A stretch of DNA of 64,000 nt from Pavona decussata (GCA_977016875.1 CDRNST010000095.1:62001-126000); one strand, 5' to 3'. Shown: positions 10,041-41,777, counted from the first letter of the stretch. Numbers and translations: made by a program. The notes: generated by a model from the letters alone, not told the origin.

Positions 10041-11194
10041 TATGTGTGTATATAATTAAAAATGTCACTATAAACATGGTGTGTTTCTGTATGGAGACCG
10101 CAACACAGTCCTGACTTGTTCCAAAGGCAACTAGTACTTTCAAAATGTGACTTCAGTTTATAAAACAATACATAAATACATGTTTTTACTTGTTAGCAAA
10201 ATTGACATTGGTGTGTGATTGAGTTTAATTACTGAACATTAATGTTTATCACATACCTTTAGATTTAAACTGCCATCATTTACACAAAATTACTAGCTTT
10301 CTTTTTTGTATTCAATTTTATATTGTGCAACTTTCACAACTTCAAAATCAAGTAACTTATCAAGAGCTTTATTTCACTGTCAAATGAATAATTAGCAGTT
10401 GTCAAAGTAACAAGCAATTAAACATCGCTTAAACTTCAATACGATGAACAAGTTCGGCATAAGGTCAAAGGTCATTTTCACCACATCAACTAAAGATCAA
10501 CTATAGAGTTGCCATTTTGGCTTAATTCAAGAATGCCAACAAAGACACTACAATGCTTAATCTACAACTGTAAGGCCATGTATTAAACTACATGCATATA
10601 TCAAGTCTGAAGTTCAAAACACAACTAATGGGTGCATTCACGATTCACATGTAAAATTTCAACCAAATTGTTGAGATCTAAATGGTATACACTCTATCAA
10701 ACAATGCAAAACCCTCAAGTTGATCACTTCCTTAATTCTGCGCCATAAAACACTTGATAATGTGCAAACAGTGCGAGAAGAAAATTAGAGTTTGATAACT
10801 CTAGTGGATGAAATGCTTTAAATAATGTAAATATTATACAAGCGTATCGAGTTAGATTTTGAGCGATCCCTAAATCTTGAGCGTCAATAATTCTACGTTT
10901 ATATTTGAACTTTAACGGATATATGGGCATCCATATATTGCCTAACTGAGGTGTAAATGGAATTGTTTCACCAGTTGATGAAATTACTATATATAGAGCA
11001 GAATGGAGCATGAAATCTACAAAGTTGCGTGCAGGTCACGCCATCGCAAAAACAAGAAATTCGTGACAGATTTAAATTACAAACAAGAAAGGATGTTCGC
11101 AGTTTACACAAAAATTGAAAAGACCACCCGCACCTATTGTGAAAATCCCTTTTTATGAGAAAACTAGACTGTCAAAAACAACTTTATTACTCAC

Positions 11195-11274
11195 CACTCG
11201 TGCGATTCTCTCTTGCGACTCGCATTTCCGACAAAACCACGGTCCCTTCGGCACCTGCACGATTCCGTAGCAAG
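11195..11274 (-). CDS. MLLT10: MLLT10/AF10 exon 2 (80 nt)
   Basis: CAG acceptor, GTGAGT donor; (A)CYGIVQVPKGPWFCRKCESQERIARV. Confidence 0.93.
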
Positions 11275-11354
11275 CTGGCGATCGAGAGATACAAACATCA
11301 GAACACATCTCGAGTGTAATAACAAGATAATTGAAAGAGGCCCAAAGCTAGTAC

Positions 11355-11466
11355 CTTGATGCACAGCAACATTGCACCCGTGTCCGTCACAATAAACCAA
11401 CGGGTTTTCGTCCCATCCTCTTTCATCCGAACAAACGCAGCAACCTCCTATCATCTCTTTTACCAT
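11355..11466 (-). CDS. MLLT10: MLLT10/AF10 (AF10/AF17 family) coding exon 1, start of PHD1 in the PZP domain
   Basis: Translates MVKEMIGGCCVCSDERGWDENPLVYCDGHGCNVAVHQ, the AF10/AF17 N-terminus; donor CAAG|GTAC; phase 1. Confidence 0.93.
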
Positions 11467-13060
11467 GTTTATAAACCTCGATTATTGCTAAGCACCTTTC
11501 AGGAGCTATATGGTCCCAATTTAAAGAAAATCGGGCAAAATACAGACACGGTAAAGGCGCTCCATAGATCGAGTGCAGTTTTCAAAACTAAAATGGACGC
11601 GCGATGCTGCACATGTTCGCAGTGCGACTGCGTTATGTGGAAATTCGCTGACCCACAGGGGGTGACTGCGGAACAGAATGCAGACTAATTCGTTCACGCC
11701 AGAGGTGACTTATTAAATCAAACTGATTGTAAAGCTGACATTGAAACATGGGCCAGATTAAAATTGCCCTTTGCCGAAGTGTCAGCTTTGCAATCCAGTT
11801 TGTAGGGATAGCATACTGTCAGTCACGCCACTACATCCAAATTGTTTTTAAACTTGATTTTGACAAACAAAAAATCAAACCAAAACAAAACAAACAAAAA
11901 AGTTTTCTTGAAATAGTTTCCTCGTACTAGTATTATGCGCAATGGCTCAACCCTGATACGGTCAATGCTTGGTTGTTGACCAAGCAAGCTATGACAGTAA
12001 GGTACGTCTATAGTCAGGAGCCCATAATGGGCTCCTGCTATAGTATTCGTTAGTCAGTAGTCGGTGAGGAGAGGGGGGGGGGGGGGGGAGGGGGGCGACT
12101 AAACAAATCTAACTTCTTTATTCTTTTTCGTCCCCAACGTGGAAGATAGCAGCCACTGCCGAGTTTAGATCCTCTTCTATAGTTATCTATCTTTTTGCTC
12201 TTTTAGGAACCTGTCTAACCGATTTCCGTTGTTGTGTCGCAATTAATTAAGGACGATTCCACCGTAATAATATATACAAAGGCATCTTATTTGAGCGGTT
12301 TATGACTAGTTTGTGGGAAAAGGGCTAATGGACACATTTTCCAAAGCATTTTTTTAAGCTTAATTACGGCTTCACATAAAGTACAATATTTCGTTTTTCA
12401 GGTCTGGTAAAATAAGAGAAAAAATAAAAATAAACGAGAAAGAAAGAAATACCGCTACACCTCAAGTGTTAGCCGTATGTTAAACAGTCTTGGTCTCGAA
12501 TCCCTGGAAAAGAGAAGAAAGATCTGTCGACTAGTGATGATGTATAAAATGATTCACGGCCTTGTAGATATGAATGTTCAAAATTATTTTCAGTTCTCCT
12601 GGGAAACGCAAACACGGAATAGAGTGTAGTCATGTCTTAAATTTCGGACACCCTATATCACCAAAAATGCCTTCAAATTGTCCTTTTCAAGGGACTGGAA
12701 TCAGCTTCCGGCTGACATAGTTACCGCTCCAGTCACCGCTCCATCGTTGACTGTTTTTATGAGCGAATAATTATACCCAACGGGCAACCTCTTACTCAGA
12801 ATGGCGTTTTAGTATTGCCTCACCGGCTGTACTAATCAAGCAGTCGTCGATTAAGGAGTGCGTTGGAAATTTTTGGATATTTGTAAAAGGAGCTAATTTC
12901 AATTTGGGTTTAATTATTGCGTTCAGTACAGTGCAATGCTTCCCGACCCTCCCCTTCCTGCCAATGTATCTACTCGTAGAGACTGGGACAAGCGGGGAAC
13001 GGGAACTGCTCATTTCCCACGAGGCACTTCGCGTCACTAAGCTCCTTTCAATGTTTCAAA
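11467..13060. promoter_or_regulatory. Divergent intergenic region / candidate bidirectional promoter of MLLT10 and RBM45
   Basis: Start codons 1.6 kb apart, pointing away from each other; YY1-like CAAAATGGCTGC overlaps the RBM45 ATG. Confidence 0.5.
12460..12770 (+). mobile_element. CR1-type LINE 3' fragment in the MLLT10-RBM45 intergenic region
   Basis: SVSRMLNSLGLESLEKRRKICRLVMMYKMIHGLVD...AFKLSF..DWNQLPADIV. Confidence 0.65.
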
Positions 13061-13357
13061 ATGGCTGCGAATCACCAGCAAGCTATGGATGCTGGCTCTG
13101 TTTCAAGCCGTGTAGACGTAGACAACCCCCCATTTTCTCGAATCTTTATAGTTTGTAGTAAAAAACATTCGTCAGACGACATGAGGGCTGCATTTCAGCA
13201 TTTCGGTAGCATCGAAGATATCTGGGTAGTCAAAGACAAACAGACGAAAGAGAACCGCGGCGTTTGCTATGTGAAGTTCGCGAAAGCGTCTTCGGCGGCA
13301 AGAGCGTGTGAGGAAATGGATGGAAAAGTGATCGGAGAAGATGCCAAGCCCATCAAG
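13061..13357 (+). CDS. RBM45: RNA-binding protein 45, exon 1 (RRM1)
   Basis: MAANHQQ...DNPPFSRIFIVCSK...ENRGVCYVKFAKASSAARACEEMDGKVIGEDAKPIK; donor AAG|GTGAGT; 99 codons. Confidence 0.92.
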
Positions 13358-15287
13358 GTGAGTCAAGATCCTAACTTCTTGAAAGTTCGTCATGCTAGCG
13401 TCGTGTTCAAATTTTGAGGTTTGCATTAAAAACTTAATCGGTTTGTAAGTAAAGTTTGTAAGCATTGTGACAACTCACTAATTTGCAAAAATTTAAACCA
13501 TGTGCTCTTGTTCTCTGCGCTTTCCTTGTGATGTTTTGAGGGATGTGTCTAATCACTGATCGTATAAATATGCGATCTTTTTCTCTTTTGGGATTTTGTG
13601 TAGTTGCCTTTGATTGATAACTGAGAGCTTCAAAGGGAATTGACGGATTAGAGGATAGACACAAATTTCATAAGCTTATTGTCTTCAAACGAGTGCTTTC
13701 AAGTTGTGAATTATTAATGTTAGATGACCACTTTTTTACCCTAAGTTTGAAATGATTTTATTGCGTTGATCTAGGGGAAAACTCGGTACAAAAACGTTTC
13801 TCTGGTTACACAGTATGCACTTTCTTTAGGGTGAATTTTACTCTCAAATTTGCACATTCTTGTTGTAGCTGGACCCCCAGAAAGCTGTTAGCACAAGATA
13901 AATAAGCGTGCTTGTAGCTACGTGGAAAAGTAAATTAGATTTTTTTAAACCATGAATATTTTACATTTCCAGATTAACTTCATATTAGCTGTAGAAAAGA
14001 AAAAACTCGAAATAAACCTCTATAATTTATTTAAGTTTTCTTGCAAAGGCGAAAAAAATTATATAAGAAAACTTTGAAAACTTTAATTATGTTTTTAATT
14101 CTGAAGATTTATTTTTGTTTCTACATGGTGTACCCCTATGGATTCTATGAAGGCTCTTTGTTACACTTGGTGAGGTAAAGCTTTTAAAAATTAATGGGAA
14201 ATTGCTTTTTCCGGCCATAGTGTTTGTTCTGTGGATTGAACCTCTAATGGCATTGGAATTATAAAATGTAGTTTCCCTTCCAAAATAAATTTTTGATGCA
14301 TTAGCCTATTTAGGCCTTTAACCAAAGTATCTTTCATTGGAAGTCTCAAGTAAAATTTATCTTTGCATTCTCAAATCAACAAGATTTGTTAAAAATGTTT
14401 TGTGGATAGTGCAGTTATTTAAAAGCTATGCATGGTACAGTAGTAGAGGTTTTTCAACAAGTGAATTAAAACATTGTCATCTTTTCCTGCTGATACCAAT
14501 GCGAATAATTTAATTAAGCCAGTAGATTTTACCGTACTTACTTTAAATCAAAGTGTGAAAAAAATGCTTGTATTTGAAATTCTTTTAACCTTAAAGTGAA
14601 TTTGCAGATGGTGTCCAACCTCTTACATTTTACGGTTCACTCACTGCAATAAATATTTATATCTTTCAACTTGTTGTTTACTATTTTGGTCAATGATCTT
14701 TGATTGAATTTCCAAATACTTCAATATTTGTACATAAGTTTTTTTCTTCATGTATCTAAACAGTGCATTCGAAGTGTGTGATTGACATGAAAATAATACT
14801 ATTGCTCTATTTTGAAAGTTTATTGCCAGCCCTAACAAAACATAAAGAAGTGGTGTATGTTTTTCAACATGGATTCAATGTAACTGACCCACCCACCAAA
14901 AGGTTTTGTCAATATACTAGCTTTTTTCTAGTTTATTCGAAGTAACTGAGTTTCCATCATCAAGCTCGTTCTTATACAATTCTGTAATTGGTTTTCAAAC
15001 AACTTAATGTTACAAGTCTACTAACTTCTAAATACCAGTAAAAAAAGTGTCACATTCAGCTTTTGTCTATGCAAGTAGCGCATTTCAAATGAAAGCTTTA
15101 GAACTGTCTTGATGCTATATGTATTTCAGAAAGTTTTGTGCTCGCAATTTTTGCGGTGTTCAATCCTTTGATCCTGTATTAATTTTAAGGCTTTCTTCAT
15201 ACTGTTTGATATAAACAAACTTTTGAGTTTGTGAAAGCTTGGCCACCTGTGAAAGTTACTGTTGTGAATAAATTAGTATTTTCCTAA

Positions 15288-15557
15288 NNNNNNNNNNNNN
15301 NNNNNNNNNNNNNNNNNNNNNNNNNNNNNNNNNNNNNNNNNNNNNNNNNNNNNNNNNNNNNNNNNNNNNNNNNNNNNNNNNNNNNNNNNNNNNNNNNNNN
15401 NNNNNNNNNNNNNNNNNNNNNNNNNNNNNNNNNNNNNNNNNNNNNNNNNNNNNNNNNNNNNNNNNNNNNNNNNNNNNNNNNNNNNNNNNNNNNNNNNNNN
15501 NNNNNNNNNNNNNNNNNNNNNNNNNNNNNNNNNNNNNNNNNNNNNNNNNNNNNNNNN
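15288..15557. other. Assembly gap (270 N) in the RBM45 intron
   Basis: Run of n characters. Confidence 1.
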
Positions 15558-15681
15558 ATTCGTTATTTGGAATTTTTTACTTTCTTGCCCGCATTCTCAA
15601 TACTTAGCCTTGAACCCAATTTCCAGTGTTGAGCTCTTCTGTCAGAGTGATGCTAAACCTTTCATGTACTCTCTTTCCCAG

Positions 15682-16866
15682 GTGATGATTGCCCAGTCAA
15701 AGTGTTCAGGGTCAAAAACTGATTTCCAGGATGAGACAGCCCTCACCCGATTATTCATCATCTGTCCCAAAGAATACACAGAGGATAACTTGCGCCAGAA
15801 GTTCCAGGACTTCGGTGAGATAGAATATGTGCAGATTGTGCGTGACCACACTACTCATGAAAACAAAGGCTATGGATATGTCAAGTTCAGGAAGTCTTCG
15901 TCTGCTGCTGTTGCGCTAGAGAACTGTGATAAGACGCTAAAGGCTGTTTGGGCCGAACCCAAATCAGCAAAGATAGCTCGAAACGCAGCAGCGGCTGCGG
16001 CAGCGATGCAGTCCACGTTAATTCCTCATAATCCATTCCTAGAGGCAAATAGCTATGTAGCGCCAGCAGCAGCGCCTCCAGTGACCCTGAGCATGAACAC
16101 TCAAGCAGCTCTTCCAGGGGTAATGGATTACTACAGTGGACAAAACCCAACAGCAGCTGTGGCAGAGTCGATAACAACATCGCACACCCCCACCCGGTTG
16201 TTTGTCAAAGTATCACCGATGATAACTGGTGAGCAGTTGTCCCGCCTGTTTGACATCATCCCAGGCATGCAGATGTGTGATTTAAAGCGGAATTTTAGCA
16301 CAGGGGAGTCAAAGGGGTTTGCATATGTCACGTACAACTCCGTAGGCTCTGCAATCTATGCCAAGGAAAAGCTCAATGGGTTTGAATACCCCCCAGGTTC
16401 AAAGCTTGTGGTAAAGTACGCTGAAGATCCCCCTGGTGTGCACAATAATGGCACAGGTCAGGGCAGCGATGCCACTTTTCAGGTGCAGTCATATGGTTCT
16501 AAGTCATCACTAACTGGAAGTTCATATGCAGTAAACTCCGCTGCTGTTTATACCTCAGCAGCTCTCCCTCCACCAGCCCCGTTAGCAGACATGAACTCTG
16601 AAGTGGCCTCAAGGCTGTTTATAGTGTGCCAGCCAGCACCACCGCCAGAGAGTGCACTTAAAGATGTCTTCAGCAGATTCGGAAACTTGATTGACGTGTG
16701 GATGATGAAGGAGCGTAATTTTGGCTATGCTAAGTTTGCTGCCAAGGAATCTGCTGATGCAGCTATTGAAGGCTTGCATGGCCATGAGGTTCTTGGAATG
16801 AAGTTAAAAGTGATGCATGCCGATCCGCCCAAGTCCGAGGCATCCAGAAAACGACCGCGCACGTGA
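15682..16866 (+). CDS. RBM45: RNA-binding protein 45, exon 2 (RRM2, HOA/pseudo-RRM, last RRM, C-terminal NLS)
   Basis: Acceptor ctctttcccag|GTG, phase 0; RNP1-type motifs KGYGYVKF, KGFAYVTY, NFGYAKF; C-terminus RKRPRT; total protein 493 aa. Confidence 0.92.
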   Translation: MMIAQSKCSGSKTDFQDETALTRLFIICPKEYTEDNLRQKFQDFGEIEYVQIVRDHTTHENKGYGYVKFRKSSSAAVALENCDKTLKAVWAEPKSAKIARNAAAAAAAMQSTLIPHNPFLEANSYVAPAAAPPVTLSMNTQAALPGVMDYYSGQNPTAAVAESITTSHTPTRLFVKVSPMITGEQLSRLFDIIPGMQMCDLKRNFSTGESKGFAYVTYNSVGSAIYAKEKLNGFEYPPGSKLVVKYAEDPPGVHNNGTGQGSDATFQVQSYGSKSSLTGSSYAVNSAAVYTSAALPPPAPLADMNSEVASRLFIVCQPAPPPESALKDVFSRFGNLIDVWMMKERNFGYAKFAAKESADAAIEGLHGHEVLGMKLKVMHADPPKSEASRKRPRT

Positions 16867-17088
16867 TGTATGCACCATAATTCTCCTCCTGGAATTCTAG
16901 CGTAGCATGGATTTGTGTAAAACAAAGGTAATGTTATTTATGTACAATCTGTTACTACATGTTAACTTCCTATGCAAGACATCTTTCAAGGTGTTTGCCA
17001 TATGGGAACAGACTTTCTAAACTCACAGACTACAGCTCCTGAGCACGGCTACAGAGCCCCTCAAAGCACACATTCTGTACTGCCCCTG

Positions 17089-17376
17089 GGACTTGTCAAC
17101 TCGACATGGACAACTTGACTGGACATCACAAAAATATGGCGAGCTCTTGGACTAAACATCACAGGGCCATACTACTGTACACATCATGGAATTCACAATA
17201 TTGGACTTAAGATACAGGACTTGTGGACTGGACATCACAAAAGTCACAGGACTTATGGACTGGACATCACAGAAAATACAAGACTTGTGGACTGCACACC
17301 ACTGAAGATACAGAACATTTGGACTGGACAACACAAGATACAGGACTTATGGACTGGATAACAAAAGATATGGACT
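17089..17376 (+). repeat. GGAC(A/T)-rich degenerate ~31-32 nt tandem repeat in the putative RBM45 3'UTR
   Basis: 17 GGACW motifs in 288 nt; about 5 units of AAGATACAGGACTT(A/G)TGGACTGGACATCAC at 17209-17363. Confidence 0.85.
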
Positions 17377-17980
17377 TGACATGATGAAAGAACTGGATAT
17401 TACAGATGGATATAAACTCTAGGTGGTCAACAGAATGATCTTAACTATTTTAAATTGAACTTTTGCCAAAAGAATGCAATTTTAAATGTTATTTCTGATT
17501 TTAAACAGTCGACATGTACACTTCCATGTGCATGTATGTGCACGTTCTTGTCAGACTGTTCTGGTGTAACCTGTCTTAATGTGTTTGTTTCTTATCATGA
17601 CATGCATGTAATACCGCTTTGGTCATTACACATTCAATGTGTTCAACAAAAATTGTCACACAGTTTCAGCTCCAGTTTTATTCTGCCCTTTTATAGCATT
17701 CTAGATCAGCAAAGTGATCTTTTGCAAATATTAATTTTTTTATTGTTTAACATGCATAGGGGGGAATTTCCGATTGACAAAACACTCATTTACTCAAGTT
17801 AGTTTACTCGTGTAATAACATTGTTACTGTGGCAAAGTTTTGTAACGTTGAAAACATCCAAACACATTTCATATTCTCCTAGTGCTGGTGCTGTTTTTTT
17901 TGCTTGCATTTTAAGAAATCACTGATTGTAGATCATATTCATTTACTGTAATTCTCATTCATTTTGTTTTATACCCTGCT

Positions 17981-18143
17981 TGCAGAGGATTCTTTCTAGT
18001 AAGTCTTTTAGCATGTACAAAGTCGTTTGCATCTCTAGTATTTCGCGTAGTCGGCTTGTTTTTTAAGCCGACTACACAAAATACTAAAGACGCGAAAAAA
18101 ACTTCTTACATGCTAAAAGACTTACCAGAAAGAATCCTCTGCA
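17981..18143. mobile_element. Hairpin MITE downstream of RBM45
   Basis: TGCAGAGGATTCTTTCT(A/G)GTAAGTCTTTTAGCATGTA inverted arms, about 37 bp with 1 mismatch. Confidence 0.7.
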
Positions 18144-19161
18144 TATTCATCATATCAACATATTTCATATTCTCCTCACATCTCACATCTCTTCATATTC
18201 TTCACATCTCAACATATTTCATATTCTCCTGGTGTTTGGTGTAGTTTATTCTTGTCCATGTATTTTTAGGAATCACTGATTGTAGATCATATTCATCGAT
18301 TGTGATTCTTGTTCATCCATTTTGTCTTAATCCTCCAAGCTGCAGTTAATGAAAAGAAACATCATTCTCTGTACTCATGTTCTGCCAGCTCATCATTGTT
18401 GGCATTTGCAAGTTGTTGTTTTTTTTAAACGTTGCAAATCCTTCATGTCAAGGAATTTTCTCAAGTTCTAGTGATTGTGAGCTCCTTTATTTTTAGTTGA
18501 TGTCACTTCAGGACAAGTTTATGCGATGCATAAATAAGCAACATAGTATTTCTAAGATTTTCAGAGATTTTAGTCATCCTCAAAAGAAGGTTATAGGTGG
18601 AAAAATATAGCATCTAAATCTTTCTTTTTTTTTTCCTCGTTGTTTGAGGAATTGATAGCTAGATATATTGTGAAGACATACTCTGAGGTACATGTACATG
18701 TAATAATATTGTTATCACACACAAAAAATTTTGTCTTTGGTTTAAATGGTATCATGCATCCTGGGAATTAAAGAAAAACTGCATTAGAGGTGTACATGGT
18801 TGATATTGATTGGTGATTCAGTTACATGCAGTATACAAATTATATTAAAAGCATTATTTTGCTCTCTTCATTTCCTTTGCTTTTATTTCTCTATGAAAGT
18901 GGTATTTAAGTAATTGTTCTTTCTCGTTGTACGTTTGATACACCGGTTGAAAGGTTTTGTAGATTGAGTCAGACATCACATCAAAAATTAATGAAGAAAG
19001 TTATGGCTTTGATGAAAATGGGTTAAAAATTAAGACAACGATATTATCACCAAATATATACAGAAATGGTGATTATACCCCTAGGCGCCCCCTGGGGCAA
19101 TACTAATTCATATGTTCTTGACGGGTTTATTACGAACTCACAATATGCTAAGCTCCCAGTT

Positions 19162-19234
19162 GGCTTGATAGCTCAGTTGTTAGAGCACTGCACCGGCATC
19201 GCAGAAGTCATGGGTTCAAATCCCGTTCAAGCCT
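19162..19234 (+). repeat. tRNA-like cloverleaf within a dispersed repeat (pseudo-tRNA)
   Basis: Acceptor stem GGCTTGA/TCAAGCC, D stem GCTC/GAGC, T arm ATGGG-TTCAAAT-CCCGT; anticodon loop CCGGCAT lacks U33; same family at 42940-43390. Confidence 0.65.
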
Positions 19235-20715
19235 GATGTTTTTCTTCAGGTTTTTTTTCGCTGCGGTCTAGTTGGGTAGATAATCGCGAATGCGAGAATC
19301 TTTTCTTCTTCTATTAAAGCATGAAACCTCTTCTTCAGTAAACTTGAGCTGGAAAAAAAAAAAGGTTTGGCGGGGGAAGGGGTGATTGATCAAGGGTACT
19401 CGTTTTTTCAAGGCCTTCCCTTGAGTTTTGGAATAGTGAAGATCTAACGGCTGTCAAGCGTGATGAAGGGGAATGAAGCTGGGTAGAATATGAACACAGC
19501 TGGCACGTACATCAAAATTCTGAACTCAACAATGAATGTAATATAAATCGGGCTGTATTCTCGCCAGTTGAACTTTACCATTTAAAATAGATAAGTTTGT
19601 TACTCTTCACGTTCAGTGCTTTCCAGTTGTTAATTACAGTGTATCGCTAGAGACTTAAAAATCTTTCAGAAATCAGGAGGTATAGAAAAATTTTCAGCTG
19701 CAAACTAATAAAGTTATTGTTTTGAATTTTCATTATAATTTTATTTCACAATTATTCCAATTGCACTTGTGGATATGAAATTATAGATAATCATCTCATA
19801 TCCTACAAGCTTAAGTGGAATAATTGTTTTATTAAAAACAACCAAGAAATATTGCTAGATCTTGTTGATTTCACTTTGCAAGAACAACCAGAAAACAATT
19901 TAATGGTCGCTATTTATCGGGCATGGAATAATGGCTCAAATACCTGTACCATGGCCCCTAAGCCAATCAAATCTCTTGAATTTTATTATCCAATCAATGA
20001 TCACGTTTTTAACGATTACGAATATTTCAATTTGAATGGTTGTTGAATGTAAGTTGAATGTAAGTTGAATGTAAGTTTCTTCTTAGTTTCACTGTTCGTG
20101 CGACTAATCCTTGTGGGCAGAGACACATGCAAAACAGTCAGTTTTTTTTCTCGAAAGACGCGAAACGCCGAAAGCGTGGTGCGAGCCCAACAGGCGTGTG
20201 AAGCCTCTCTCAATCTCCCCCCAATCCCACTCTCCGTTCACACACTCGCTCCAGACCTTTAGTTTGAAGACCGTGCGCATTCATGCGTATAACAGACCAA
20301 CTGAAAAAATACGACTGATTTGCAGTCTACTGTGAGTAATCAAAAATATTTACCAAGGACTAAATCGAACTTTCCCTACGACAAGTCCGCTAGTGTAAAC
20401 ACAATAGGTGAACTTGTCCCAGCCCCTGGGACCCATTTCTCGGCGGAAGGCCCGAAGACTTTTCTGGGCGCGAGTACTATGATATGTACACAATGTTCCT
20501 CAACGGAAAATCAGAGTTGGTTGATTCTAAAATTGTTAAAGTTCTATGGAAAGCATTGAGCAAAATTATCACTAATCGAAAGAAAACTGATCTCAAAACT
20601 TCTTTCCGGGCCCCTGTGAGTGTGACTTGTTACGGAGACTAGTCGTCAAGTCCGCCGTGCCACCGCAGTTATCTTCTCGTGTGTCCCGGACTTGAAATTT
20701 AGGATTTGTAACCGT

Positions 20716-21975
20716 GGGTGGTTGCCATTAGCCAAAATCTTCGGTTGGAAATTTCGGAAACTTTCGGTCTTAAATTGAAAGGTTTTTTTTGCCATTCGTT
20801 CCAAACTTAGGGACCGATCGTTTATTACGTCGTAGGGGGGGAGGGGGGGGGCGGCGGTGGTTTTCTAAAAAATCGAGTGTATGAAAATTTTACTCCCCCA
20901 AAAATCTTTCAAACAAAAGTTTTACCCCCACTGCGATGACAGTTTGAAAATTTTACTCCCCCCCCCCCCCCATAGTTGGCCTGGTGGTTGAATTGTTGAG
21001 AAGCTCCTGGGCACAACGCTTGGTTACATGCGGAAATCGCTAGCTCTCTGAATCTGAACTGGCAAGAGAAACAATCAGAAGTTAGGCGAAATTAAGTACA
21101 GGCGTAAGGTAATTAAGGTAATTAATTAACTTCTAAGTACATTGAACTTACTTAAGGTACTTACTTAAGGTAAGTAAGGTAATTCACGTACCTTAGATCA
21201 TCTCTTCAATGTCTCGATAATATTTAACGATGTTTTGTTATTGCTGGAGTCTATCCTCCAGTCGTCAAAAGAAGGTACACAGAAGGTCAAAGCAGCACGG
21301 GGTTTGAGAGCAGTACAGGAGCATTTGATGTATGGATGTGGATATATAGATTTCGAAGAAGCCTACCATCTCTATTCGTCTTCTAGTCAATTTTTTTGCC
21401 CAGATAAACAAGCCTTCAGAGATAAACTGCTTGATGGAATACACGGTTTGCCTGTCTACGTCATTACTCAACCTATTACGTGCAAGATCTTTGTCGCTCT
21501 GAAGAATAGTAGCGATATGGAGAAGTTCCTAGTCGATTTTACCAACTCTATGATTGATGAGAAGAATAATTGCTAAATACATTTAGTTGGTACCTTTTGC
21601 ATGTCTTAAAATTTTACCCCCCTCACTTTTCGTACAAGGTAAAAAATTACCCCCCAAAAAAGAGCTCTTTTAAAAAAATTACCCCCCCTCAAAAAACACC
21701 GCCCCCCCCCCCCCCCCCCCCCCTAGGACGTAATAAACGATCGGTCCCTTACAATCTCTGATTGGTAGATCAAAAAACCTTATGGGATAGCGCAAGAATA
21801 AACTGGAAATTTTGTGCAAATGGACGGTAATTTCCGTTCAGAGCGTTTAGAATGGAAAAGTAAGAATACCTCCAAAGGTAGTCCATTTGTTCTGGAAAAT
21901 TCCTGTTTGATTCACGCGTACCATTTGTACTTCAACAGGTTAAGCCGAAAAATTTTGGATAAATGGAAATCACCC
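20716..21975. mobile_element. Outer MITE hosting the 20810-21748 element
   Basis: CGT direct repeats at 20713-15 and 21976-78; TIR GGGTG(G/A)TT(G/T)CCATT. Confidence 0.7.
20810..21748. mobile_element. PIF/Harbinger-like non-autonomous element with internal cargo
   Basis: Exact TTA target duplication at 20807-09 and 21749-51; TIR GGGACCGATCGTTTATTACGTC(G/C)TAGGGGGG; subterminal AAAATTTTAC(T)CCCCC repeats. Confidence 0.85.
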
Positions 21976-23311
21976 CGTGTCACTGTTCCAATGAAATTCT
22001 CCATGGTCGAGTCACACCCCTCCCCTCCTCCCTTGGGTTATTATTCTGCCACACGGTCTGCGTGTCTGAAATTTAAATTGACCAATCAGAGCTCATGCAG
22101 TAGGCCAAAAGTCATTGACGTCAGCGCTCTCTGATTGGTTGTGTCGAACAGAAGAAATTAATTACATGAAGCCAGAAGATGTTTAGGAAAGTGTGTACAG
22201 TGGCGCGAAGAATTGTTCTCAGTTAGTCGACAATGAGATGTTACTATTTTTAGTAGAGCTATTAAATGACATATGAAAACTAGTTTCGACTGTCGCTCGT
22301 ATTCCTTTTTGCAGCATGTGGTGGAGATGTGTTCAACCAAACAACATATTTTTTTTTCTTTTTTTTTTTTACCCTTCCAGAAACGCAGGAGAGTGCAGTC
22401 CGAAGATTAGAGCTGAGTGTGCGCATGCGCTGAACCTGTACTTGATGTGGAATAAGACTCGCTTCCAGTTCACCTCCCTCTAGTGTGCTGGAGACTGGTG
22501 CAAGTTGTTCGGACGTGTACGTCACAGGATGCATCGACCTCGATGCCGTGTCACTGTAAAATGAAAACGAGGGCACTTGGAACTGAAGTAAACGCAGTTA
22601 ATTTCGTCATTGAACGGCAAATGAACAGAAAAGGGTTTTGGAATAAAATGATAGTCACTGAACCAGAAATACTGACGTTTTCAAGTTTTTTTAAAAACTT
22701 GAAAACAAGCATAAACAAACAAAACAAGCATATTTTTTTGTTATTTTGTGTGAGAATAATTTTCTATAAGGTAGCGCTTACGGGTCATGGGTTAACAACC
22801 AACCCTCATATTTCCGTCATATTAGTTTTCACTGATACATCTCTATGAATATTTCCAAAAGGTAATGGTTTTTAGGAGACAGGTAATGTCATCACACGTG
22901 ACCAGTATTTTTGAAAATTGAACGCATTTTTGAAATATACATGTCAGTTTTGAGCAAGTGAGATTTCAGAGTTCCCTTAGAAATTTCTCTAGTTTATTGA
23001 CGGTATAAAGCTGTGGATATTATTTACATTACAGCATCAAGTATTTAAAAAAAAAAAAAAAAACAGTTGTTTCCCAAGTATTTTGATTTTTTTTCAGTCA
23101 CTGCGTCCTTTTCGAAAAGATTTCCAGGGAAATCTTCAAGATTCCATCATTCAAATGCCGGTTATTAAAAAGAGGAATTCCGAATGTTTATTTCATCCTC
23201 AGAAATACTGGTCATGCGTGAATTACTGACTGTAATCGTTCCCAGAGCCCTCGTCCCGTTCCGCTGGACAAGGGTAACGAGGGCTCTGGGAACGAGATTT
23301 CATCGTCAGGG

Positions 23312-39515: not shown

Positions 39516-40824
39516 TGAGCTGTCAGCGAAGGTCGCGATAGGTCGTGAAATTAATACATCCCCGGCCCCGTATTGCTTTCTATTCTCTGCGTGGTTTGGA
39601 GATCAGTGATCGTAAACAACATTACATTTTATCGCTTTCCCGGTTCTATGGTTTCGGGGAGCGCAGAATTAGCCAATCGCGGCAGCTATGAGCTCGTTAA
39701 GAGTTTGCGAACTACTCTGGCGACGTGCTTTAAGCGGTCACATGTTGCGTTAGCAAGCGCTAGCGTTTCCTTTTGATTGGTTCTTAATTTATCCTGTGGT
39801 TTTATGATTTATTACCCACGGCCACATGTGTACATACAGTAATTTTTGGTACGATTTCAGGAACGTATCCCTTGCCAAATATTTCTCAGGTATTCGGTGG
39901 TGTTTATGATTCTAGTCTCTTATCGGAAACAAAAGGTATTAAAGGAGTTGCTTTGCGGCACGATAGTTGGTGATAAAGTTTCACCAAAAAAATGTAAATA
40001 CAAATAAACTTTATCATAAATTTAAAAGCTACATACCATTGCAAAGCACGTTCTAATGCAATTTGATATAAAATTCAATTTGTCTCCTGCGAAGGGTTCA
40101 GAAATCTTAAAGATAAATCTTGTCCAAGTTCAGTTATCACCTAAACAACGTAGTCAATTCTCGTTTTTTAGCGTTTAGTTTATAAACGAAACCGTTACTT
40201 TTTACAACCGCTTTTCCGTGTAAGCTCATGTCCAAGCCCCCAGTGATGCCCAGCGTACTCTATAATTTCTCTTCACAATATCACTGCTTAAGCAAACCTA
40301 TAGGTGACGAGAATAAGAGAACTGATCACAAAAAACAAAATGTCCTGATGTTTAAACAAATTCTCCCTACTAGTGCCCTAAGAAATGTATGAAGAAGAGT
40401 AAAGAGAATGTAGATGGATATGGGGGCTGCAAGTGTCTAGACTTGAGTCATTTATGCAGTTGAGAGTTCCTGTGTTGCCCGGTGTTTATGATGCTGCAGA
40501 CTAAGGTGGTTCTAACTTTTCAATCCACGAACGAAATCTTGAAGCTAACTATTCAAATGAAAGCTACAGAACAGTTAGTTTTCGTGGTTCTCCGTCATTA
40601 TGCTGCATAGGGTGTTAAGTGCAAGCATTCAAACAAAAGTGCTAATGTTTGTTATGTTGTACTGCGAGGTAGATGAAATTCAAAGGTGTGGTCATTCATC
40701 AGTAAGACCTCCTGAGAGTACTGTCTTGTGATGAAGCTGTTTACGGGTGCTGTACAATGTGCCTCCATTATTTTTCCTCAGGGATAGTAAAGCGAGTGTG
40801 GGTAGAATCCTCGTAGACTTTGTA

Positions 40825-41777
40825 CAGTGGAACCCCGATCTACGGACACCCGCTTAATACGGACACCGGGATATTACGGACAGTTTCGTTTGTCCCGACG
40901 AAAAGCTCATATCTATTTTCTCTAAAATTAAGCCGCTAATACGGACACCAGTTAATACGGACAGCAGACACTTTTCTGTGTCCCGAGTGACAAACTCTCA
41001 TACGTCGTCAACCCCGCTTTACGGACACTGGTTATCTAGACTATGTACGCACGGTCTATTTTCATTCACCTATGCTTATACATATACATACATATCCTTT
41101 ATTTAAACATGATGGGGTTTAAAGCTCAGAGCTTGTGGGGTCGTTTGAAAATAACTGATTACAGTATAAAACTATATTAAAATGGTGATAACATTACATA
41201 CAGAACAGAAAACAAAATTTTGACTACAGCATATTAAGGCATAAAATGTAAAATATTCAGTAGCATTTGAAATCTTGGTATTGTAGACAATGTACGCGGT
41301 CAAAATTATGACATATTTCTACGGGTTAATACGATTTTATTATAAAAAAAGAAACAGTAGCAAAACAGTGTGCCTAATGTTTGATCAGTCTGCCTTTCTT
41401 CCGGTGTTTAACCCTTGACTGAAGTCTTAACTAAAGTTTTCTGCCTACTACTACACAAAAGTCAGTTCTCCCCTTCTTCCTCTTTGACGTCCTTTGCTTG
41501 CCGCTATCAGCATCAGCCTCCGAGCGGAAGCTGATGCTGATACGACCTTGATTCCGTTGTCGTGTTTCAAAAACAATAAGTAATTGGGAGACTATATGAT
41601 ATATGACCGCAAGAAAGGTTACAGTTACAGGCGTACAGTTTAGAAATTAAACAACGTTTGTCTGCTTCAGTCTTTGTATCGATAAAACATGTGTCCGCCT
41701 GTCCGTGACGTTTTTTCTGATAGCACGGACACTTTGGCATGTCCCCTTGGCCTTGGTGTCTGTATTAACCGGGTTCC
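40825..41777. mobile_element. Tc1/mariner (pogo-like) non-autonomous element, degenerate right end
   Basis: TA|CAGTGGAACCCCG followed by several TACGGACA(C) repeats; inverted GGTGTCTGTATTAACCGGGTTCC near 41777. Confidence 0.6.

Follow-up and report, generated by a model that had tools for sequence, protein, structure and literature searches.

The RBM45 gene of the coral Pavona decussata carries, shortly behind its stop codon, a dense sense-strand array of GGAC motifs that sits inside an alternatively spliced 3'UTR intron. Within the window analysed here, a stretch of 64,000 nucleotides, we observed the array itself, an mRNA isoform that retains it and a second isoform from which it is spliced out, and the splice donor, the array and a proximal enrichment of the bare word GAC are conserved in relatives. 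We judge the element likely to be functional. The best explanation we can offer is that the array may act as a multivalent platform to which RBM45 binds on its own transcript, steering the choice between splicing and polyadenylation; given the sequence evidence, we give this explanation about an even chance.

The RBM45 gene and its two 3' isoforms

The two coding exons were searched singly for homologues and domains, and by homology the gene is assigned as an RBM45 orthologue, as had been proposed from the sequence alone. Exon 1 contains a Pfam RRM_1 stretch (E=1e-14) and matches the structure of human RBM45 RRM1-2 (7csz, E=7e-37). Exon 2 encodes RRM2, a middle RRM-like domain and a C-terminal RRM, contains the other three of the gene's four RRM_1 stretches, and closes the protein with RKRPRT ahead of the stop codon. 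It is 89% identical to a Montipora protein named "RNA-binding protein 45-like" and matches hundreds of RBM45 proteins, from Acropora to insects, and both exons match solved human RBM45 domains (7csz/7csx and 8wq3). The coral protein retains the R-x-F and aromatic residues through which RRM1 and RRM2 contact GAC (PMC7968997). RBM45 is an ALS/FTLD-linked, m6A-preferring RNA-binding protein. Intron 1 includes a run of N at 15288-15557 and a conserved non-coding block at about 14140-14300. The features of the locus are collected in Table 1.

Table 1. Features of the RBM45 locus, with positions counted from the first letter of the window
Feature	Position	Strand	Basis or remark
RBM45 exon 1, ATG to donor AAG/GTGAGT, encodes RRM1	13061..13357	+	ORF, sequence
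Intron 1	13358..15681	+	GT..AG joint 13355>15680, skipped by contigs of X1, X3, X7 and X10
RBM45 exon 2, coding part, 394 codons and TGA stop (16864-16866)	15682..16866	+	
3'UTR common to both isoforms, 61 nt	16867..16927	+	two branches leave the end of X1 record 2 at 16927
Long 3'UTR, unspliced isoform	16867..18800	+	contigs to 18723 (X3) and beyond 18800 (X1, X10)
Alternative 5' splice site AAAG/GTAATG	16924..16935	+	exon end 16927; without G at +5
Alternative 3'UTR intron, 5453 nt	16928..22380	+	first ~1.9 kb kept as 3'UTR if unspliced
GGAC array	17089..17376	+	17 GGAC, 0 GTCC
Ancestral core, three 32-nt units	17214..17309	+	7-taxon MAFFT alignment
Polypyrimidine tract and CAG of the distal acceptor	22346..22380	+	sequence; tract strong, long and T-rich
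Downstream non-coding exon	22381..22893	+	joined to the 16927 donor; 3' limit nominal

RNA contigs from four runs in four studies (X1, X3, X7 and X10) were mapped across 12900-18800. Intron 1 is spliced in all four runs, and in X3 its depth is 0-5 compared with an exon depth of 53. A 3267-nt spliced contig from X3 links exon 1 to 15680-18723 and crosses the array uninterrupted, which confirms the earlier claim that the array lies within the RBM45 transcript. Because contigs of X3, X1 and X10 cross the array and AATAAA is absent from the unspliced 3'UTR before +1900 (ATTAAA occurs at 18767 and 18844), the array belongs to a major transcript, which has a 3'UTR of at least 1.9 kb. Polyadenylation upstream of 17089 is contradicted by contigs that run to at least 18723.

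The second isoform is seen in X1, where a contig covering 16169-16927 stops at 16927 and two branches overlap its end by 30 nt. The unspliced branch extends to 18009 with a depth of 15.2. The spliced branch (record 4), a 543-nt contig with a depth of 5, joins 16898-16927 to the letters at 22381-22410 and holds 513 nt past the junction; the first 30 nt of the downstream exon (22381-22410) were checked letter by letter, and in the window species this isoform, 16927>22381, is represented by one contig from one run. The donor at 16927/16928 and its continuation at 22381 therefore define an alternative 3'UTR intron. The downstream exon is single-copy in the genome and has an AATAAA at 22643, and because the next gene downstream sits on the opposite strand, it does not represent read-through into that neighbour. 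When exon sequence 22381-22700 was searched by BLAST against eight orthologous loci, the flanks of which end about 5 kb after the stop, only poly-T matches were returned, and in the relatives the exon has either diverged or lies beyond the flank ends. A short 3'UTR intron using an apparently conserved TTTTAAACAG about 640 nt after the stop was considered and rejected; its AG is missing in Montipora and the pocilloporid, and no contig contains the joint.

The array starts 160 nt inside the alternative intron and thus occupies the region 160-450 nt downstream of the donor. The sequence-only reading had placed it in a long last exon, which holds for the unspliced isoform, but splicing from the 16927/16928 donor can remove the array altogether. 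This arrangement suggests that the control point is likely to be the nuclear choice between splicing and polyadenylation, beyond the fate of the mature UTR. The junction lies 61 nt after the stop in the window species and 46-72 nt after it across relatives, a borderline distance under the 50-55-nt NMD rule. A preprint gives ten exons for RBM45 in human and mouse, of which one is non-coding (10.1101/274647). As the ATG is in exon 1, this is probably the final exon, and its presence would fit an old 3'UTR intron.

A GGAC array conserved among corals

A recount of positions 17089-17376 returned exactly the 17 GGAC sites first read from the sequence, 12 of them GGACT and 5 GGACA, with no GTCC; bare GAC occurs 19 times and GTC twice in these 288 nt. 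Across the window there are 132 GGAC and 123 GTCC, about 2 per kb, and the chance expectation computed from this density is about 0.6 GGAC per 288 nt. The runner-up 288-nt stretch of the window holds 6 GGAC and the top stretch for GTCC holds 5, and none of 1000 dinucleotide-preserving shuffles of +150 to +600 attained 17 GGAC. The diverged 31-32 nt repeat that had been noticed in the sequence is recovered by TRF as a 32-nt unit in 5.5 copies at 17209-17377 (76% matches), and degenerate copies of the unit span approximately 17086 to 17420, flanking both sides of the periodic part. Because each 32-nt unit has three GGAC, the 17 sites are amplified copies rather than 17 independent events. In a profile built from 21 unit instances, the unit consensus resembles GGACTTATGGACTGGAC followed by ATCACRGAAGAT.

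Orthologous loci were taken from ENA, Logan and JGI contigs assembled from environmental samples or transcriptomes, and cluster names place three of them in Acropora, Montipora and Pocillopora/Stylophora. GGAC enrichment is present in these coral relatives. The best 288-nt window after the stop, located in every case at about +170 to +520, contains 10 GGAC in sp93 (a coral with 93% protein identity), 11 in Montipora (mRNA contigs), 8 in Acropora, 5 in the pocilloporid (which also has GGAAC and AGAC variants), at least 7 in sp81 (contig stops at +407) and 12 in sp79, and GTCC is essentially missing from all of these windows. GGAC ranks 1-3 among the 256 tetramers in five of the coral lineages. 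In a MAFFT alignment, three successive 32-nt units line up without offset in the window species, sp93, Montipora, Acropora, the pocilloporid, sp81 and sp79, which together cover the complex and robust coral clades and have proteins that are 79-93% identical. Matches to the array were also found by BLAST in sp93, Montipora, Acropora and sp81. The first ~550 nt after the stop can be aligned in all seven taxa, and the sequence beyond +700 cannot.

Within the unit, information peaks at ACTT in the first site, ACTG in the second, AC in the third and a TCAC tail; the G's that precede AC are weaker, and the U that follows GAC is strongly conserved. The earlier impression of variable spacers around preserved cores is thus only roughly right: the A-C cores, the following U and the TCAC tail stand out, but individual GGAC sites turn over into GAAC, TGAC, GCAC or AGAC.

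Turnover of single sites is one of several observations that would be expected of a neutral minisatellite, in which slippage multiplied a 32-nt unit that happens to contain three GGAC, at a place in a UTR or intron that tolerates it and without any function. The tandem structure accounts for most of the raw count, individuals differ in the length of the array (deletions remove 13 nt at 17217 and 12 nt at 17282), and the copy number of the unit varies between species. Such a history would nevertheless have to accommodate three units that are positionally conserved in seven lineages whose UTRs are unalignable beyond +700, a strand asymmetry that is complete in every coral, and GAC enrichment that recurs independently in non-homologous UTRs of distant phyla, as described below. 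The array is moreover single-copy, a 381-nt stretch of it having one BLAST place in the 602-Mb genome, and it does not behave as a high-copy minisatellite found in both orientations. Taken together, these data make a functionless repeat very improbable. The remaining genomic TGGACTGGAC pairs belong to a separate 12-nt repeat arranged in inverted pairs, which are probably transposon ends.

MiRNA targeting in cnidarians typically involves near-full complementarity, and several corals share an almost unchanged core of some 17-22 nt. The units might on these grounds be repeated target sites for a miRNA or piRNA with near-full complementarity, and repeated sites would silence strongly. When the 602-Mb genome was searched with the 18-nt unit core at up to one mismatch, however, matches were present at the array only and none was antisense, so that there is no evident genome-encoded near-perfect guide, and the signal shared across Metazoa is a 3-nt word and not a 20-mer. 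We consider small-RNA targeting extremely unlikely.

The donor is conserved together with the array. AG/GTA is aligned and invariant in 7 coral lineages, and the pattern AG/GTA, two variable bases, GT(A) is found 46-72 nt after the stop in all 10 of 10 anthozoan-like loci. The usual G at +5 is missing, which makes this a weak donor of the enhancer-dependent kind. Six Montipora mRNA contigs cross the homologous donor into the array with its 11 GGAC. Another four contigs, drawn from four other runs, terminate precisely at the homologous G/GT, which is the assembly-graph behavior expected at an isoform branch. Folding of the array is slightly better than that of shuffled sequences (z=-1.75), with an MFE frequency of 0.0002 and no defined structure. 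The absence of a defined fold fits a single-stranded platform, though it is not decisive.

GAC behind the RBM45 stop codon in other lineages

A profile scan of metagenome contigs yielded 80 further RBM45-like loci. For 44 loci the sequence covers the C-terminus together with 200 nt or more downstream, and these loci sort into 31 groups whose UTRs are unrelated in sequence. All 64 trinucleotides were scored, with a correction for composition, over the 500 nt that follow the stop, and then ranked. GAC is in the top 5 in 17 of the 31 groups (binomial p=1.4e-11 against 5/64); the other 14 lineages are without clear GAC enrichment. Along the strand that carries this signal, the median rank of GAC across these loci drops from 4 near the stop to 23 between +700 and +1200 and to 29 between +1500 and +2000, and GTC is depleted. 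An empirical base rate was obtained from 504 control windows of this 64-kb sequence, 4.4% of which have GAC at rank 5 or better, the two highest-scoring being the array itself; the controls in this comparison are confined to distal parts of the same loci and the window.

Judged by the closest relative with a name, the positive groups include hexacoral-like, medusozoan-like and pancrustacean-like ones, and the observed/expected ratio (O/E) of GAC is 1.9-2.1 in each of these classes. The contexts in which GAC occurs differ. GAC of the DRACH type has an O/E of 3.84 in corals, compared with 1.22 for non-DRACH contexts (CGAC and GACG), and GGACT alone reaches 17.4. The corresponding DRACH and non-DRACH values are 2.2 and 1.94 in medusozoan-like lineages and 1.69 and 2.29 in arthropod-like lineages. 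GACGAC, RBM45's RNAcompete motif, is present in 8 of the 31 lineages and its complement GTCGTC in 1. Because non-DRACH GAC is equally enriched outside corals, the common denominator is bare GAC. DRACH contexts are favored in corals but not in the arthropod-like or medusozoan-like lineages, and the GGACU form may be either a coral specialization or simply the sequence of the amplified unit.

GGACU is the optimal METTL3 site, and the coral data could be read in terms of methylation alone, with METTL3/14 acting on GGACU sites in a long unspliced exon to give a hypermethylated m6A patch, and YTH-type readers rather than RBM45 setting decay, export or poly(A) choice. Every one of the 17 array sites fits DRACH and 12 are GGACU, the U that follows AC in the unit shows high conservation, DRACH contexts and GGACT show the coral excess given above, and in the unspliced isoform the array is far from any exon junction. 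MT-A70 and YTH genes each occur at three loci of the genome, as matches above the cut-off that are assigned at the family level. With the DRACH fit and both gene families present, m6A at the array appears feasible; a literature search found no cnidarian m6A map. A patch read by YTH-type proteins would leave unexplained, however, why the cluster is linked to the RBM45 gene in so many phyla and why CGAC, GACG and GACGAC are enriched outside corals as much as the DRACH type. The coral excess of GGACT may also stem from a single amplified unit, as the seven lineages share one ancestral array. On this evidence we consider methylation without RBM45 an unlikely basis for the element.

The array could instead be a splicing or polyadenylation element bound by another RNA-binding protein of the UGGACU type, without self-regulation by RBM45. 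Candidate binders include IGF2BP-like proteins, FMRP-like proteins (WGGA, ACUK) and an SR or hnRNP protein. The varied contexts of GAC are an obstacle to such a binder, since bare GAC is all that Cnidaria and arthropod-like lineages have in common and it matches RBM45 better than it does longer words, and there is no reason for a site of this kind to track the RBM45 gene. In its favor, the conserved unit is longer than GAC, with UGGACU, ACUG/ACUU and a TCAC(A/G) tail, 13 of the 17 array sites have the context UGGAC, and a site just behind a weak donor would be apt for intronic enhancers or silencers of any kind. We regard a different binder as rather improbable.

RBM45 as the predicted reader of the array

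RRM1 and RRM2 of the human protein each bind GAC (PMC7968997, PMC11402289), and RRM3 binds GACG, with A and C selected most strictly (PMC11402289). The full-length protein favors RNAs that carry several GACs; short GAC spacings lead to 2:2 or 4:4 complexes, and a spacing of >9 nt lets RRM1-2 bind one strand 1:1 (PMC7968997). RBM45 CLIP peaks are ~90% intronic, contain GAC or bipartite GAC and overlap m6A, and splicing close to the bound sites is impaired when RBM45 is lost (PMC9472474). Binding is enhanced by m6A in mammals (PMC9472474, PMC11402289). An enhancer with the sequence GGGACGGU, located just downstream of a donor, is bound by RBM45 with a KD near 18 nM (PMC7064759). As of 2021, a structural paper noted that no physiological RBM45 target had been reported (PMC7968997), and our literature search found no report of RBM45 autoregulation.

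The coral array, with single-stranded GACs in an intron behind a weak donor that competes with internal polyadenylation, closely fits this published profile. The A-C cores, which are the most conserved letters of the unit, match the bases that RRM3 selects most strictly (PMC11402289). Other features of the array argue against a simple match. The U after GAC and the coral GGACU/GGACA core are unexplained by human RBM45 specificity, as RRM3 prefers GACG, and the GAC-to-GAC spacings of 2 and 5 nt that occur in the array are shorter than the >9 nt compatible with 1:1 binding by RRM1-2 (PMC7968997). Whether RBM45 itself is the reader of the array is, in our estimate, close to evenly balanced. The proposal in the sequence-only reading that the mRNA offers a landing pad for its own protein gains indirect but broad support from the conserved contact residues, the array in seven corals and the GAC signal in 17 of 31 lineages; the splice context was missed in that proposal.

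In the self-binding model, an old cis-regulatory RNA element in the RBM45 gene would have grown into the array of this species, a single-stranded multivalent cluster of RBM45's own word GAC that here takes the form of GGACU/GGACA. Two fates are open to the pre-mRNA. In one, the 16927 donor is spliced to the exon at 22381, removing the array and placing an exon junction 61 nt behind the stop. In the other, splicing does not take place and polyadenylation ~1.9 kb into the intron keeps the array as 3'UTR. Nuclear RBM45, an intron-binding and oligomerizing protein, would load onto the array in proportion to its concentration, and this loading would alter use of the donor relative to intronic polyadenylation and so shift the isoform ratio. 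Both mRNAs encode the same protein and would differ in fate, with the isoform ratio acting through mRNA stability or export to set RBM45 output and feed back on RBM45 level. By analogy with the mammalian protein, m6A at the coral GGACU sites could strengthen RBM45 binding.

The closest parallel is TDP-43 (TARDBP). Autoregulation of TDP-43 involves alternative 3'UTR introns and poly(A) sites. It acts through the protein's own 3'UTR (Ayala et al. 2011, as cited in PMC6382748). Both TDP-43 and RBM45 are ALS-linked RRM proteins with a cluster of their own motif after the stop in their own transcript, and in both the cluster goes together with an alternative 3'UTR intron and alternative 3' ends that leave the coding sequence the same in the two isoforms. 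The features of a TDP-43-type arrangement found at the coral locus are a sense-only cluster of the protein's own motif, an alternatively processed 3'UTR intron and an element conserved with the gene. The two systems differ in that the TDP-43 motif consists of UG repeats, whereas that of RBM45 is GAC/GGACU, and in that the RBM45 element is a 32-nt tandem array that can be traced across phyla. Binding and feedback have been shown for TDP-43, whereas for RBM45 we infer both here. RNA-binding proteins that regulate themselves by way of an intron in their own 3'UTR are thus already known, TDP-43 being the classic example, and the RBM45 case would be new.

Regulated unproductive splicing of SR and hnRNP genes employs poison exons or 3'UTR introns. 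The coral locus resembles these genes in having deeply conserved non-coding sequence in an RNA-binding-protein gene, beside an alternative splice behind the stop; in comparison with them, its junction 46-72 nt after the stop across taxa is near the NMD threshold. Parvovirus B19 provides a further comparison, which rests on the published description of the virus. Its intronic enhancers ISE2 and ISE3 are bound by RBM45, for which RBM45 oligomers and U1 recruitment have been proposed (PMC7064759). Like the coral array, they are GGAC-containing intronic sites, one of them placed directly after a 5' splice site whose use competes with internal polyadenylation. The viral elements are two single sites with the core given above, whereas the coral has 17 GGACU/GGACA in RBM45's own gene. 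Mammalian intronic RBM45 targets, which affect splicing efficiency, likewise resemble the array in being intronic, multi-GAC and single-stranded with DRACH overlapping GAC (PMC9472474, PMC11402289), but these targets lie in other genes (NTRK2, WNT3).

An own-motif cluster at an alternative 3'UTR intron amounts to a concrete proposal for a homeostatic circuit of the TDP-43 type, apparently much older than vertebrates. With three GAC per 32 nt, repeated, the coral array is a putative natural high-valency ligand of RBM45, and it would be useful for asking how spacing drives RBM45 oligomerization and whether early-branching animals have m6A reading by RBM45. A bolder suggestion, which on the sequence comparisons we put forward tentatively and consider doubtful, is that the RBM45 self-sensing loop predates the cnidarian/bilaterian split and that the coral GGACU array also reads m6A writer activity. 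If this is true, the coral RBM45 mRNA would be a combined sensor of protein dose and methylation. If the cross-phylum GAC signal holds against gene-set controls, the same loop would be predicted in model arthropods and vertebrates.

Length variation and repeats 3′ of RBM45

The length of the GGAC array, built from a repeated 32-nt unit in the RBM45 3′ region, varies among the sampled individuals, with 13 nt deleted at 17217 in RNA run X10 and 12 nt deleted at 17282 in run X3; both deletions take out part of a unit. Length polymorphism is also found in Montipora transcripts, where a 15-nt insertion/deletion in the proximal 3′UTR, about 118 nt after the RBM45 stop codon and 5′ of the array, separates L024 and L028 from L025–L027 and L029.

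An RBM45 homologue with 67% identity (L012) carries a post-stop tandem repeat of approximately eight to nine copies of a ~120-nt unit, unlike the coral array. GGAC as well as GTCC occurs in this repeat, whose GAC content is very high. It represents a separate expansion in another hexacoral-like lineage, located at the same position 3′ of the RBM45 stop codon.

Coordinates of features described in the text
Feature	Location	Strand	Remark
PHD-finger-like ORF	window 11191-11466	-	upstream of RBM45
Intron 1 block	window 14140-14300		
GGAC array deletions	window 17217 and 17282		
Palindrome	window 17981-18143		
GGAC patch	window 40760-41060		
12-nt repeat arrays	C20:3571118-3572793; C23:684135-686207; C84:2123105-2123939; C171; C443		inverted pairs
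L012 post-stop repeat	L012:5560-6700		

Repeats elsewhere

The GGAC patch second in density within the window is built from recurring TACGGACAC words and has no relation to the unit of the RBM45 array. In the 602-Mb genome assembly of the species, a 12-nt repeat (TGGACTGGACYC) forms short arrays that lie in inverted pairs spaced 0.8–2 kb apart; these paired arrays resemble a transposon family's terminal inverted repeats.

Other features of the RBM45 locus

The PHD-finger-like ORF (CCVC...C..HGC) sits in a block 71% identical to the Acropora locus and is a neighbour gene of RBM45, with synteny conserved. Within the long RBM45 3′UTR we observed a near-perfect palindrome of 163 nt, at which contigs break in three RNA runs. 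Its arms are nested, one pair being 48 nt long with 90% complementarity and the other 32 nt long with 84%. The palindrome may be an inserted MITE-like element or a long hairpin of the UTR.

RBM45 intron 1 contains a block of non-coding sequence, interrupted by stops in each of the three frames, which includes a conserved AAAATAAATTTTT and can be aligned to Acropora and to the coral lineages sp93, sp79 and sp81, whereas the remainder of the intron is not alignable. RNA contigs of low depth were found near this block in run X3. Possibly the block serves as another regulatory element, such as a poison exon or a poly(A) site within the intron.
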